Counted from the stretch's first letter, positions 9,050 through 14,762 are shown. The stretch: DNA of 64,000 nucleotides from Paramoeba atlantica (GCA_977017575.1 CDRNVI010000149.1:186001-250000), one strand, 5' to 3'. The notes: generated by a model from the letters alone, not told the origin. Program-made: numbers and translations.

Positions 9050-10892
9050 TTCTTTTTTCTTCTTTTTCCACCACAGCCGATTTTTGAGAAAACGCGAATT
9101 TTAAAAATAAAGTTCGGGCCCATTTTTTTGGTAGCAATCCGGTGTTTAAAGGTGTCATAAGCAACTTTTTGATGGTTGTTAAGGTGGTAATTTTTTTTTT
9201 TTTTTCAGATATTGGATTCACAAACCCAGCACCCATAATTCAAAATCCATTTTCATTTTTCAAAGACATATGATAATATGTCGCTGCTCGAATACCAGCA
9301 ACAGAGCCAGGACTGTGTTTCCAAATGTAACCCAACTCGGTAAGTCCAAAACTAGGTGTATTTTCCCATCCAAATCCTAAATAAAAGAGAAGAGAAAGCC
9401 CAATGTCTTTTTTGTCACAATGAAGAACTGTCCCATGAGCAATTGAGAGCCAGAATTCTTCAATCAAGCGGAAAATCTTTGTTGAAAGAGTCATTTGCTG
9501 TCCGGTTGCATCAAACTTTTTGTGAATGTCTTCAATGCATTCTCTCTGTTTATCAAATATTGGTGGGGGTGGGGAAGATGAAGATGTCTCTTTGATTGTT
9601 GAAGAAACCCATTTTTCGAAACGTAACTCAAAGATCGCATATCCTCCGAAAAAGAGATTCCACAAATGGAACAATCATATCATTTGTTTGGCCTGCTTGA
9701 ACATATTCCCGAATCGGATTTGCTTGCTTTGCATGAATTCCCATCGTTAACAAACACCATCCTCGACAATTTCTCTTTGTTTGATTAAATATAAAACATT
9801 GGAGGATTGAGAGCTCATATACCTCCTCAGGAGATCCAACCGATTCCAACCAAAACATATCCTTCAAACCACTCTCCGATTTAAAATAAACATTTCCGGT
9901 CAATTCCTTCAATAAATTCTCATCTTTCAAAAGGTCTTGTTGGGTATTACAACCACCTGGATTCGCCAATTTTTGATAAAAATCTTCAGTGGCACCAGGA
10001 AAATGGGCCTTCCAGCTCGAATCTGAGAGGCGATCTAATGGGATCCTGTTCACATCATCAAAGAGAATTGTTGTTGTTTGAGAATTTTGTTTTGGAACTT
10101 CAAAAGATTTAAAAAGAACTGGAACTGGCTCTGCTGGTTTGATTTCAAAATAAGTTCTCATCAACGACAGTGCTTTTTCCCTGGTTTCCTTGTCAGAATA
10201 ATGTGGTCGTCCTGGTTTTGAATAATCCATCGGTTTTGAGAGTCCATGTGAACCACTTGCTTTCTTTCGACTCATTCTTCCAACAATTTCAGAAACCTGG
10301 ATATTGTGTGTGGAGTGGATTCAAAAAAAGATATTTATAAAAAATGAGAATAATAATAATAAAAAAAAGAGGAAGGAAAAAAAAGAGGAAGGAGAAAAAA
10401 GGAGAAAAAAAAAGAGAAAAAAAAGGAAGAAAAAAAAGGGAGAAAAAAGGGAGAAAAAAGAAAGAAAAAAAAAGAAAGAAAAAAAGAAAAGAAAAAAAAA
10501 GGGAGAAAAAAGAAAGAAAAAAAAAGAAAGAAAAAAAGAAAAGCGAGATGATCGAACGGAAACACAACCTTCTTTTCAAGCACTTCCCAAGACACTAAGC
10601 TCTTATTTGTTTTTACAAGTTCTCTTACAGTCCAAAAACGAAAACGATCAAATAATAAAGGTGAAGGAGGAGAGTAGAAACTATCCTCATATGATGGCTC
10701 TGAAAGACGAACAGGAGGTAACAATAATGTCGAGAGAGGAAAAGGGTTTTTTGGCGATAATGTCCATGAAGAAGAAGAGAAAGAATCATGGGTAATTGAT
10801 TGACAGAGCAAAACATCCATTTCTAATCTCCTTCTTTTCTTTCTTTCTGATCGAATTTGTTTTTTTCTTTTGAGATTGAATTTGGTGAGCAT
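9050..10892 (-). pseudogene. TET/JBP-family 2-oxoglutarate/Fe(II) dioxygenase-like gene, spliced and disrupted
   Basis: Predicted exon 1 10892-10629 (basic NLS-like start), GT-AG intron 10628-10297, then ORFs 10275-9628 and 9674-9240. Core LHCDKKDIGLSLLFYLG...SPGSVAGIRAATYYH: His 9420-9422, Asp 9414-9416, His 9270-9272, and TGA (9240-9242) at the expected 2OG-binding Arg, followed in frame by IMGAGFVN. The 3' end is uncertain. Confidence 0.75.
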
Positions 10893-11087
10893 TTTGAAAA
10901 AAAGAATCAAAAATTTGAAAGAAAGGAAAGAAAGTAGCAATTTTCGTATTGGATTCTTTTCAGATTACTTTTTTTCTTTTTTTTTATTAGAAAAATACAG
11001 CCAAAACGATTTTGTTCAAGCACTTTGTTTTTTTTTTGTTTTTTTTTTGCTTTTTGTTTTTTGTTTTTTGTTTTTTGTTTTTCTCAA

Positions 11088-11771
11088 ATGTCTGAACAAA
11101 CTGCTCACTCTGTTCAAACCTGAACTCCTTCTCGAAAACTCCTTGAGGCAGATGAATCTTTCTTTAAAAGAGGAAACTCTGTTCCATATTGCTACATCTC
11201 TCTTGAACCCTCATCACATCAAAGCGTAAACAAACCAAAAACTACAAACCAAAAGAAAAACCAAAAAGAAAAGTGTCCTCCTTGTGCTCTTTCTCTTTTG
11301 GAGAGCAATATTGCAAGCAAGTTTTCATGTGATACAATTGTTGATTCTGTTGTTATTGAGCTTGATCGGATTGCCCATGATCTTTTTTCAAAAATTCCCT
11401 CGACTGCTTGTAGTATGCGAATCTATCGAACAAAGGTCAATGCAGTTCTGTTTGAACTCCTCATCATCCCTCATCTTTTGAGAAGTGGTGGCGACCTTTC
11501 TCCTCGCAAGAAGTCAGCGCCAGTTTTTCTGATCCAATTTTACGAAACAAAAACTTTTGAACAAATTTTTTCAGGACTTGCATCAAAGGGACTCTTCAAC
11601 CCAATGACGAAAAAATTCAAAAATGGTCAAAAGATGTGGATTGTCGCTCATAAAAAGTATCCGGTTGTATGGAGATTTTCTGCAAATCTTGGAACTCTTG
11701 CAGTTCATTTTTTTGTTCAAGGATGGACAAAAGGAGGACTTCCAATCAATGATCTTTATATCTCAAATTAA
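11088..11771 (+). pseudogene. Orphan two-exon gene (~200 aa, ORF X) with one in-frame TGA, function unknown
   Basis: ATG 11088 (MSEQTAHSVQT*TPSRKLLEADESFFKRGNSVPYCYISLEPSSHQS), phase-0 GT-AG intron 11226-11303, then the non-low-complexity ORF to 11771. Confidence 0.5.
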
Positions 11772-14762
11772 TAAATTTATTATTTCTTAAGATTGTGATT
11801 GATTGAAAACGTAATCTTCGTGGTTTTGCTTTCGTTTTTTCCTCTTCTTCCTCTTCTTCCTCCTCCTCTTCTTCTCCCTCTTCTTTGTCATCAAAAGAAA
11901 ATTCATCCTCTTCCTTTTCTTCTTCCTCTTCCTCTTCCTCCAACGAGAATTCATCTACCTCCTCATCCTCAAAGATCTCCTGTTCTAACTCCTCCATAGA
12001 CTCTCCTGTCTCTCCCTCAGGTGGAACTACATAATTCTTTAAAATGAGTTCCCTTGTTGTTTGTGGAACTCTTTTTTCACAAAAATCGATCATCTTCTTT
12101 TCAATCGCTTGACAACTTGGACATACTTTGTTTTCTTCCCCAACATCTTCCACAACACAAAACACAACATTTTCCCTTCTCAACAAAACGATACACGATC
12201 CTTGATATTGTGCCCCCGAACAGATAGTTTCACTGGACAAAGGAGGTGAGCCAAAAATCGAAAATCGTCATATTTTGTGGCTGTCTCATACTTCATTGCG
12301 CCATAGCCACATTTTTTCACAAGTCGCTTTTGAATTAAATTTCGTAACTCTCCGCTTTGGCAACTACTGACAGCTGGTCCAACTCCTATTTGAAAAAGAA
12401 TGAATGAAAGGAGATAATCAATAAAAAAAAAAAAGCAGAGGGGGGGAAAGAAAAGAAAGGAAAGCAAACCATAATTTTCATAGACTTTTTTGTAAAAATA
12501 AGGGCAGTCAAAACAAAGAGTATAAAACCATGTGATAATATTCGAGCTTGGAAATATTAATTTCATAATCTGAATAATTTGCTTTCCTGTTCTCGTCATT
12601 TCATCTAAAAGGTGTTGAACCTCACTTGGTTCCAAATCTTCCCCCTCATTATCAGTGAATTTCAAACATTCCCAAAAAGAGCTCATAAATTTAATTCGCT
12701 GACAAATAAACGAACGAAAAAGCTTGTAACTTCAAATCGAACAAGGGTGGCAACCGGTGGTGAGGAAAACAGGAATAAATCGCTTCAACAACCAACTTGT
12801 GATAATTTTGCAATAGCCTTGTTGCTTGCTCTCCAATCAACCGAAATTTCAGCTTCTTTCCTTCCTCAGTCTCAAGAATGTACTTCCATTCAATCGTCTT
12901 TGCAAAAGAGAGCAATCCAGAAACTCTTTTCATTCGCTCCACCATCTCTTGTAACATCTTTCTCCCAAATTCCTTATTGGAATTTGCAAACTCAACAATA
13001 GTAAGAAATAAGGCCAAAGTTGCAGAGCACTTGCCACTTGCCATGAAGAGGACCATCTGGAGTAAAACGCTCACAAATCGCTAACAAAGGGGCTTCTTTT
13101 TGGCTATAATTCTCTTTCCGAATAAATTGTTGAAGGATCGCATCTCTTGCATTTTCATCTATCGACTTATCTGAAACGATTTCTTGCCATTTCACTCGAA
13201 CTTTTTCCCCCATTTCTTTCATTTTTGCCAATGTTCGCCTTCGTAACTTGTCTCGAGGAATGTCAGCATTGTCACGAGTCACATCAAGCCAATAAACAGA
13301 GAAATAAGTTGCAGAACAACCTTGATGACCAGCCACTTTACTTTGGTAAGAAATGTCAGATCGACTGGATCTCAGGAGAGACGGACAAAACAAAAGCAAA
13401 GCCAAACCAAAGATCAAATCGAAAATGTAGATTTATTCAAGGAAACAAACAAGGTGAACATTTGCTCAAGAGAGAGAAATGTGAGGGCAGTGAAAAGACA
13501 GTTGAGATGTGATCGTGACAAGAATAAAAAGGAACACAAAAACAGCGTTTTTGTGGAAGGAAACAAGGACAAAATCAAATCAGGAAGGGATAAAATAAAC
13601 ATCAGGAAAAATAGGAAAAGGGAAAATAATACAAGGGGAAAAATACAACAGAGAAAGGGAAAAGAGAGAGAGAAAGAGCAGTGATCAATCGGAGGAGCGG
13701 AGCGACAGGATGGCATCAAATTGAATAGAAGACAACCGAACAGGGTTCGTAACAAGAAAGGCCACCAATTGGAAGAAAATGGCAATGGTACAGATTTGTT
13801 TTGGTATTATCGATTTCACATGGAATTGAAACACCATTCTTTTCCACCACTGCAATTCCAGGGTTTAAAACATTCTCACAAAGCCATTTGCTCACTTCAT
13901 CATCTTCTTTGAAATTCCCACCACAGATCCAAGGCATCAATGTTGGTGAACTTCCAACTCCAACAAAGTTCACAAATTGCAAATATGTATTTGTCATACC
14001 CATCTGAAAAATAGATTTTCAATTAAATCTTGTTTTGTTTCTTTTCCTCTATGCTCCCCCTCAAAAAAAAAGAAAATAATTTTTCTACTTACTTGTTTAC
14101 TCTCCGGGGCACCATCAGTGAACATATTCACTAAAATTTGATATTTGCCTTCTTAAAAAAGGTGAGAGATTGTTGAACTTTCGAACATTGGAGCATTGCT
14201 TTCAGTCTTTTCTCAACAACTTCTTCCAACTTTCGATAACCACCTTTAACCCCATACTCAGAAGGGAGTTCATGAAACCTATATGTTTATCTTTTGAGCA
14301 AATTGTTTTCATTGAGGAGGAGAAAAGAAGCTTATTACAAAAAAAAAAAAATTCTTACTTTGCTTCAAGCTCCAATGCGGACAACATTTTCTCCCCAAAA
14401 TCCATCGCAGGCTTTGGAGCAGGAAGTTTTGGAAATGGAATTTCAAACTCTGGTGTTTTCAACTGAATTAGTTAGCTCCCCAGACAAAGGATCTAAGCCT
14501 CACTGAAATATTGATCGCATAATTTGGATTTTTTGGTAACCCATGTCATTCATCATCATGTTCACAAACTGTGCTTGTTTCAAATTGTCAGATTTCTCGA
14601 GGTTTTGAAAGTCTATTTATTAAATTTTGAAGAAATCAGAATCCTTCAAAAACACACACAAAAAAAAAAAATTAACCTTTTTGAACAGCTTTCTTCACAA
14701 CTTGCTTCCCAACGGGCAGACAAATGACTTCTTCAATCAGTCTTTTTTGAAACCTTGGATTA
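11760..14762 (-). pseudogene. RAG1/Transib-like DDE transposase, 5 introns, 5'-truncated, frameshifted
   Basis: Spliced reconstruction gives NMFTDGAPESKQ (D, 14114-14116), PVDLTFLTKVAGHQG.SATYFS (D, 13360-13362), DGPLHGK, KLKFRLIGEQATRLL, and ITWFYTL..CP....YGVGPAVSSCQSGELRN (E, 12348-12350), then a Cys cluster and acidic tail. GT-AG introns at 14676-14613, 14358-14279, 14092-14004, 13765-13371 and 12469-12386 all restore frame. Confidence 0.7.

Follow-up and report, generated by a model that had tools for sequence, protein, structure and literature searches.

A compact block of three genes is the subject here, one found within a 64,000-nucleotide (nt) stretch of Paramoeba atlantica DNA (CDRNVI010000149.1:186001-250000). 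That whole stretch will be described as the 'window', and coordinates given for the element are window positions. The surroundings of the block are eukaryotic, intron-bearing, and rich in repeats. The block itself consists of a putative 2-oxoglutarate (2OG)/Fe(II) dioxygenase gene, found on the minus strand at about 9190-10275 and termed here the 'TET-like' or simply 'cargo' gene; an orphan gene, open reading frame (ORF) X, on the plus strand at 10687-11771; and a DDE transposase gene, again on the minus strand, at 11795-14759. This order and these orientations are as described in a first-pass annotation of the same DNA, as too is the meeting of the 3' ends of ORF X and the transposase gene, i.e., near 11770-11795. 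Positions 9069-14759 of the window probably represent a dead, 5'-truncated, and frameshifted copy of a 6.04-kilobase (kb) family of cut-and-paste DNA transposons, one apparently constituting a novel branch within the CACTA-Mirage-Chapaev-Transib (CMCT) clade.

That the block is a mobile unit is seen upon comparison of the window with other contigs carrying copies of the family, which are designated here as L001, L002, L003, L004, L005, L011, and L012. When the first gene was used to look for homologs, seven proteins were recovered, 79-97% identical and each from the same assembly (ERZ24900291, ENA). Six copies which were then fetched share 90-99% identity with the window and possess the same two end points, but these end points are found within unrelated flanks. 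The block that is common to all copies runs from window position 9069 to 14757-14759, with full copies being 6039-6046 bp in length (L001 5061-11106, L005 5060-11105, L011 4696-10734). Flanks differ among L001, L002, L005, and L011, and indeed are unrelated, and the block thus is the mobile unit. As all three genes lie inside of the inverted ends, in identical order at many loci, their initial interpretation as parts of a single DNA transposon is upheld. Clustering of the cargo protein at 90% gives 11 members on 11 contigs, and the family therefore should consist of at least about 15-20 copies, no fewer than 15 of them, besides that of the window, being on other contigs of the assembly.

The element ends, as delimited by comparing copies, are imperfect terminal inverted repeats (TIRs) of approximately 34 bp, starting with 5'-CACC(G/A)CAT and giving rise to CACC...GGTG termini in all copies. 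With L011, 28 of the first 45 positions pair, and every one of those matches falls within the first 34. Though no TIRs had been noted at first, the cargo-side repeat is present in the window, at 9069-9102 (CACCACAGCCGATTTTTGAGAAAA...), with homology to all other copies stopping there and the same pattern recurring at each end in L001, L005, and L011. A hAT relic that had been raised as an alternative carrier of the genes lies outside of this repeat and is not found next to the copies in L001, L002, L005, and L011, and hence can be dropped from consideration. Flanking triplets are identical in three of five complete copies (AGT/AGT for both L001 and L005, AAA/AAA for L002), which is far above what would be expected by chance, i.e., about 1/64 for each, while a 5-bp repeat is seen at the flanks of no copy. 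A test had been suggested of whether the genes co-occur elsewhere with shared TIRs and a target-site duplication (TSD), for which 5 bp would fit Transib and 8 bp hAT. The genes do co-occur, with shared TIRs, but the duplication instead is 3 bp, as found in those three copies.

Evidence for the transposase gene includes a consensus main exon, an intact exon from L012, and D..D..E motifs in a joint alignment of transposases across five lineages (alignment A3). The consensus, which is CpG-corrected and based upon six copies, restores an uninterrupted main exon of 609 amino acids (aa) along with three upstream exons, while L012 supplies a natural, intact main exon of 597 aa. L011, at 6039 bp, is 98.6% identical to the consensus, with its cargo ORF (P0035) intact and a single frameshift in its transposase. 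Four real introns of 64-89 nt are present, at 14613-14676, 14279-14358, 14004-14092, and 12386-12469. The latter two are confirmed by an intron-less relative, P0010, which reads straight through both junctions. Five introns had been proposed, but the remaining one, at 13354-13759, is instead a 406-bp insertion into an exon.

Relatives of this transposase are few. A 301-position profile (A2), tiled from natural exon pieces and run against 1.84 billion representative proteins, returned only 18 proteins. Three of these, P0010 (657 aa), P0023, and P0009, are encoded, respectively, by the JGI metagenome contigs L006, L007, and L010, the last from metagenome 3300047667. These distant relatives are 34-49% identical to the family, with P0010 at 34% and the L010 relative at 49%. 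Conserved across A3 are the motifs F-x-D-x-A-P-E-S-K, L-P-x-G-D-L-S-Y-Q-S-K-x-G-H-Q-G, P-D-x-P-L-H-G-K-C-S, and S-C-Q-x-G-E, plus a C-terminal CxxC...CxxC cluster. The D, D, and E columns are retained in all five lineages, with 290 aa separating the second D from the E in P0010. Sequence searches, with matches to Pfam, PHROGs, NCBIfam, and PDB counted at E <= 10, yielded no Pfam match (KDZ, CACTA, and RAG1 models included) for window pieces, for the intact L012 exon, or for the relatives. Nor were RAG1 or Transib PDB chains matched, whether by phmmer or by a 663-position family profile. ORF pieces from the window matched no PDB chain at all. Further searches of PDB found nothing relevant, whether the query was a single sequence or profile A3, A5, or A7 (the last the ORF X C-terminal alignment), and a word-based homolog search using the transposase C-terminal piece found nothing.

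It is at the level of predicted fold that affinities emerge. An AlphaFold2 model of P0010, built using A3, has a mean predicted local distance difference test (pLDDT) score of 52.5 and is confident only over a helical region, residues ~265-500. This model was searched using Foldseek, with VIA-align re-scoring, and also by exhaustive alignment to 48,161 representative chains. With Foldseek, RAG1 and HzTransib account for every one of the top 42 PDB matches (E from 1.3e-3). With VIA-align, nothing but RAG1, BbRAGL, and HzTransib is found among the first 33 entries (Z of 8.1-11.0 over 150-229 residues), with the next, unrelated entry at Z 6.6. With the exhaustive search, exactly six chains reach Z >= 8, all of them RAG-family, the next value being Z 7.1 and the transposase of the P element scoring Z 6.8. 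Against RAG1, BbRAGL, and HzTransib, the model scores Z 9.8-11. Residues 220-511 of P0010 align to 710-963 of mouse RAG1, that is, of the enzyme which builds antibody genes. In P0010 the candidate second D is D220 and the candidate E is E510, both conserved, and these lie beside D708 and E962, the catalytic residues of RAG1. A RAG1/Transib-like identity, as first called, thus is supported at the level of modeled fold, but a strict Transib-lineage identity is not, given a TSD of 3 bp, missing zinc motifs, and the lack of profile matches. Overall, this transposase looks like a new branch of the CMCT clade.

ORF X, in the window, has a tentative exon model along with a conserved C-terminal domain of about 140 aa, at 11298-11771. 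Homologs are found directly downstream of the transposase gene, on the opposite strand, in L006 (41% identity, E 7e-24), L007 (36%, E 1e-29), and L010 (56%, E 1e-50), and the same tail-to-tail arrangement is found in all copies from this genome. The orphan gene therefore is a true convergent partner, as had been supposed, one that is kept in distant relatives. As this convergent position is retained even where the transposases are no more than 34-49% identical, ORF X most simply would be a cofactor of the transposase. No Kelch, other Pfam, NCBIfam, PHROGs, or PDB sequence match was obtained for it. RAG2, the partner of RAG1, is a Kelch beta-propeller, and the mere ~140 aa of conserved ORF X sequence argues against a RAG2-like propeller.

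The third gene, the cargo gene, had been described as spliced, which it is not, as intact copies consist of one ORF: P0035 (408 aa, from L011) and P0036 (349 aa). Together with P0001, these are the intact, one-piece ORFs available from other copies, and intact cargo ORFs overall are ~329-408 aa. The window version is a pseudogene, and its apparent break is attributable to a single inserted nucleotide at 9653 and to a stop created by CGA>TGA at 9240-9242. Both P0001 and P0035 possess an HRD motif, a His 50 residues further on, and an Arg 10 residues after that. Such a pattern is the hallmark of 2OG/Fe(II) dioxygenases, and its spacing equals that of the small Naegleria Tet enzyme and is typical of small TET/JBP enzymes. 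With the window copy, the HRD has become HCD (CGT>TGT) and the Arg codon is now TGA. A 35%-identical paralog, at L002:15331-15837, retains both the HxD and the distal His, with Lys at +10. That paralog (L002 14865-15837 in its greater extent, ~35% identity) belongs to another repeat, which is found also in L001 and L003, and this points to a second family carrying a gene related to the TET-like cargo.

Cargo ORFs matched nothing in Pfam (Tet_JBP included), PHROGs, or NCBIfam, and comparison with PDB by phmmer and by profile found no NgTet, TET2, CMD1, or other dioxygenase chain. A homolog search with the C-terminal half of the cargo protein returned the same family only, and a metagenome scan with profile A6 gave no confirmed relative. 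In L007, the 1.4 kb beyond ORF X has no similarity to the cargo gene. In L010, three other genes are present at the cargo-equivalent position (2969-6871): one of 292 aa with no family match and an HVD...H...R pattern; one of 243 aa with a sub-threshold JmjC match (E 1.6e-4, 22.6 bits vs a cutoff of 24); and one of 545 aa with a SET domain (E 1.3e-5, above cutoff). Comparison of the cargo with two of these L010 genes by hhalign indicated no relation. The L010 genes may be chromatin-directed cargo or instead just host neighbors, the ends of the L010 element not having been found.

Copies of this family have been decaying in a distinctive manner, with departures from the consensus being nearly all C>T or G>A. 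In L002, for example, there are 366 of these vs 12 T>C and 20 transversions. Depending on the copy, 9-49% of CpG sites have been hit as compared with 1-15% of other cytosines, for a 3-10-fold excess at CpG. This pattern fits a methylation-linked or RIP-like (repeat-induced point mutation) process, and such C>T/G>A decay is the visible pressure by the host on its repeats. The window copy has lost 24 of 272 consensus CpG strand-sites (9%) through C>T/G>A transitions. CpG had been described as abundantly retained in the block, but that retention is only modest, with an observed/expected ratio of 0.58 in the copy vs 0.49-0.53 in its flanks. In two copies, L002 2272-7990 and L003 4900-10216, C>T/G>A changes have affected 8-15% of cytosines whatever their dinucleotide context, with 42-49% of CpG sites changed and T>C almost absent, which is RIP-like or deaminase-like hypermutation atop CpG decay.

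A number of points weigh against the above interpretation and should be considered together. In terms of mobility, no 3-bp match is seen at the flanks of two of the five complete copies, these reading ATG/TGT for L011, where a 2-bp TG duplication is possible, and TTT/GAA for L004. In terms of the transposase, the C(2)C and H(3-4)H motifs, which EnSpm, Mirage, Chapaev, Transib, and RAG1 have in common (PMC12730594), are absent from A3: following the second D is GHQGC...FSVYW without a CxxC, and no H(3-4)H precedes the E, with PLHGKCS and TLCxDxP present instead. The fold evidence, furthermore, comes from a low-confidence model of a relative, P0010, in which the RNase H core is not included, and helical domains, as the tool itself cautions, can reach such Z values by chance. 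In terms of cargo, no recognizable homolog is present in the three relatives L006, L007, and L010, while its AlphaFold2 model, built from a shallow alignment, has a mean pLDDT of 34 and is mostly helical, making Foldseek comparisons using that model meaningless. For none of the three family calls, lastly, is there a Pfam, NCBIfam, PHROGs, or PDB sequence-profile match.

Among alternatives, what fares best concerns the cargo gene alone. That is, the third gene may not be TET/JBP but instead encode some other accessory protein, with its HxD...H...R pattern coincidental and the transposon interpretation nonetheless holding. This view retains an appreciable, though minority, probability, consistent with the silence of the libraries and of PDB dioxygenase chains, with the helical, very low-confidence model, and with the lack of cargo conservation among relatives. 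To be set against it are the triad and its 50/10-residue spacing as kept in a 35%-identical paralog, the persistence of intact ORFs within young copies, and the presence in L010, at the equivalent position, of other 2OG-oxygenase-like as well as chromatin-enzyme genes. In addition, one type of TET-like protein borne by fungal transposable elements is similarly beyond the reach of sequence profiles (HHpred E 1.4-19), having been recognized and confirmed only by structure (PMC12730594), and library silence on the cargo therefore is not a refutation. The TET/JBP identity as originally called thus has the HxD...H...R motif in its favor and every family library and fold search failing to back it, and a 2OG/Fe(II) dioxygenase of TET/JBP type, as suggested by that motif, is somewhat favored as the identity of the cargo.

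Faring less well is the idea that the element truly belongs to the Transib/ProtoRAG lineage, as a sister to RAG1, with ORF X a functional analog or highly diverged homolog of RAG2. The attraction is clear enough, as only RAG1, BbRAGL, and HzTransib are found at Z >= 8, as a convergent gene pair mirrors that of ProtoRAG, with this layout kept in four lineages, and as the element ends start with CAC. Transib, though, makes 5-bp target duplications, whereas those seen here are, where readable, 3 bp, and the RAG1/Transib zinc ligands along with C(2)C and H(3-4)H are absent. A 3-bp duplication in combination with missing zinc-ligand motifs argues against Transib proper, and 3-bp duplications plus CAC..GTG ends fit EnSpm/Chapaev-type behavior rather than that of Transib. 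The family profile and phmmer, too, match no RAG1/Transib chain, and the conserved portion of ORF X is short and lacks a Kelch or other Pfam match. Nor do the structural matches decide in favor of Transib, since no CACTA, Chapaev, or Mirage structure is found among the PDB matches and any CMCT member therefore might yield a RAG-family protein as its best match. A genuine Transib-lineage element consequently is improbable.

A Kyakuja-Dileera-Zisupton (KDZ) element, i.e., the classical TET/JBP carrier of basidiomycetes, would explain a TET-like cargo found beside a large transposase. It is very improbable, however, given no Pfam match to a KDZ transposase or CxC cluster, the lack of a Ulp1 domain such as that fused in Zisupton, a fold that matches the RAG family, and a TSD of 3 bp rather than the 7-8 bp of KDZ (PMC12730594). 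Hardly credible at all is that the three genes are mere neighbors that have been copied together by segmental duplication, without a mobile unit, since, even though the copies of the window, L004, and L012 were indeed spread within a >15-kb duplication, the flanks of L001, L002, L005, and L011 are unrelated, matching triplets flank three of those four, and homology ends exactly at the inverted repeats.

How the window copy came to be where it is, and in the state that it is, can be considered separately from the mobility of its family. The transposase-side end has been lost, as was originally recognized, with the truncation junction at 14759/14760, where the element abuts a piggyBac relic and past which (i.e., past 14757-14759) no other copy aligns. 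Deleted are the first ~755 bp, consisting of the left TIR, the 5' untranslated region, and the start of exon 1. This missing part is kept in L004 (3540-4997) while L012 has the same deletion. At least eight frame-breaking indels are present, including, in the transposase, at 14472-14475, 14143-14144, 13037-13043, 12715-12718, 12188, 12163, and 11803-11806. Co-linearity, at 91-98% identity, extends over window 1-15768 with L012 and over window 4000-18136 with L004, and this, along with the 5' deletion that is common to L012, indicates that the window copy spread by segmental duplication. Rather than having recently transposed, that is, it would have been copied within a >15-kb segmental duplication that is found also in L004 and L012. 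That duplication exists in at least three copies and includes, along with the truncated element, both the piggyBac relic and their neighbors. Self-comparison of the window revealed no second copy of the element.

Two further features lie inside of the element. The spacer from which the TET-like gene and ORF X diverge (10276-10686) is mostly purine-rich, low-complexity DNA, is present in all copies, and is presumed to be a two-way promoter region. The secondary 406-bp insertion in transposase exon 4 (13354-13759), for which the junction was read, is flanked by a direct repeat of ~8-10 bp and is missing at the equivalent site in L001, L002, L003, L005, and L012. Inserts of ~400 bp are found also in L004 (6993-7402 and 4556-4898), at another site, 98% identical and without obvious inverted ends, which suggests a recently mobile, short, non-autonomous element.

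Beyond the element, the piggyBac transposase relic that abuts the truncation junction occupies 14762-16300 of the minus strand, with a Pfam DDE_Tnp_1_7 match at 15298-15600 (E 7e-6). L012 in addition carries an LTR (long terminal repeat) retroelement insertion that is related to window 39819-45011. A complete ribosomal DNA unit lies 4.3 kb from the element (18S 19094-21195, 5.8S 21409-21564, 28S 21886-25923), flanked by transposon relics and tRNA genes, with tRNAs found at 5240-5312, 26166-26236, 26622-26692, and 27880-27952. The 18S begins in a manner common among eukaryotes rather than in that of kinetoplastids. Approximately 13 kb of very AT-rich DNA at 49000-62000 (GC 0.18-0.21), with a steady AT skew of about +0.40, has the appearance of an extended array of satellite DNA.

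Returning to the family as a new CMCT branch, the active element possesses ~34-bp TIRs, a five-exon gene for a DDE transposase of ~830 aa, ORF X convergent to that gene, and a third gene divergent from ORF X. The transposase would have an RNase-H-type D..D..E site that is split by a long, helical insertion domain, for a RAG1/Transib-like fold. It would bind the CAC-type ends, excise the element, and then reinsert it, usually with a 3-bp duplication, as is the behavior of the CMCT clade. ORF X may serve as a lineage-wide cofactor, possibly in end binding or regulation, comparable to TNPA in CACTA elements or to RAG2 alongside RAG1. The third gene most likely would supply a TET/JBP-type dioxygenase that oxidizes the 5-methylcytosine of the element, allowing escape from methylation silencing, as suggested by motif and by fungal analogy only. 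A broader and rather doubtful proposition is that of a previously undescribed, deep branch of a RAG1/Transib-CACTA assemblage, that is, an obligate two-protein system, transposase plus ORF X, convergent in the manner of ProtoRAG, which swaps anti-silencing cargo between lineages. Such cargo would be the TET-like dioxygenase in this family and, at the corresponding position in L010, the JmjC-like and SET-domain genes.

Were that deep-branch proposition true, then RAG-type, two-component transposases along with chromatin-directed cargo would be older and more widespread than is indicated by fungi and animals. DNA transposons with a DNA-demethylating enzyme of their own have been documented so far only in fungi, and a second, independent case, from an unrelated protist with heavy C>T decay of its repeats, would make counter-silencing a general strategy. 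A family that Pfam does not see, for which only 18 of 1.84 billion proteins were found, and which combines a RAG1 insertion-domain fold with a convergent partner, supplies as well a data point on the origins of two-gene, RAG-like systems. Biochemical tests are feasible, given the near-intact L011 copy and the intact ORFs (P0035 and the L012 main exon).

Association of TET/JBP genes with transposons is not in itself new. As described by Kojima in 2025, many fungal DNA transposon lineages carry such genes (PMC12730594), including three in the CMCT clade: EnSpm, which has 3-bp TSDs and CAC..GTG ends, Plavaka, and ESTA, with the ESTA transposase linked to RAG1 by HHpred (PMC12730594). The statement in the first-pass annotation that no RAG1/Transib-lineage element carrying a TET/JBP gene was known thus is outdated. 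No link of TET/JBP transposons to amoebozoans or slime molds was found in the literature that was searched. With regard to CMCT membership, for which 5'-CA..TG-3' termini and a 2-5 bp TSD are looked for, the termini here are CACC...GGTG and the TSD is 3 bp in three of five complete copies. With regard to EnSpm/CACTA particularly, the 3-bp TSD of those three copies is as expected, the termini are CACCG or CACCA rather than CACTA, and Pfam CACTA models (Transposase_21 and associated domains) gave no match at the above threshold.

As compared with TET-carrying EnSpm/CACTA elements of rust fungi, the family described here lacks both similarity to EnSpm Pfam models and the C(2)C and H(3-4)H motifs, possesses a conserved convergent partner, resides in a non-fungal, protist host, and has a cargo that is not recognizable as Tet_JBP. 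ESTA of Puccinia is similar in that its link to RAG1 is at the structure level only and in that it carries a TET/JBP-type gene (putative here), but ESTA makes TA duplications and retains C(2)C and H(3-4)H, while duplications here are of varied 3-bp sequences. Transib, ProtoRAG, and RAG1 (PDB 6pqn, 6b40, 4wwx) are the best and sole strong structural matches, these covering the region from the second catalytic D through to the E, and they too have CAC ends, with ProtoRAG also possessing a convergent second gene. From this group the family differs in its TSD of 3 rather than 5 bp, in an absence of zinc-binding Cys/His, with a C-terminal CxxC...CxxC present instead, and in having no profile similarity, and also in that the partner, ORF X, was not RAG2-like in any test run. 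KDZ elements of basidiomycetes are alike in being DNA transposons with their own DNA-base dioxygenase (putative here), but unlike in transposase family, TSD length, and termini. The concept of a transposon-borne TET/JBP enzyme, in short, is already known from fungi, and what is new here is a transposase lineage without profile coverage or zinc motifs, its convergent partner, and a host that is not a fungus.

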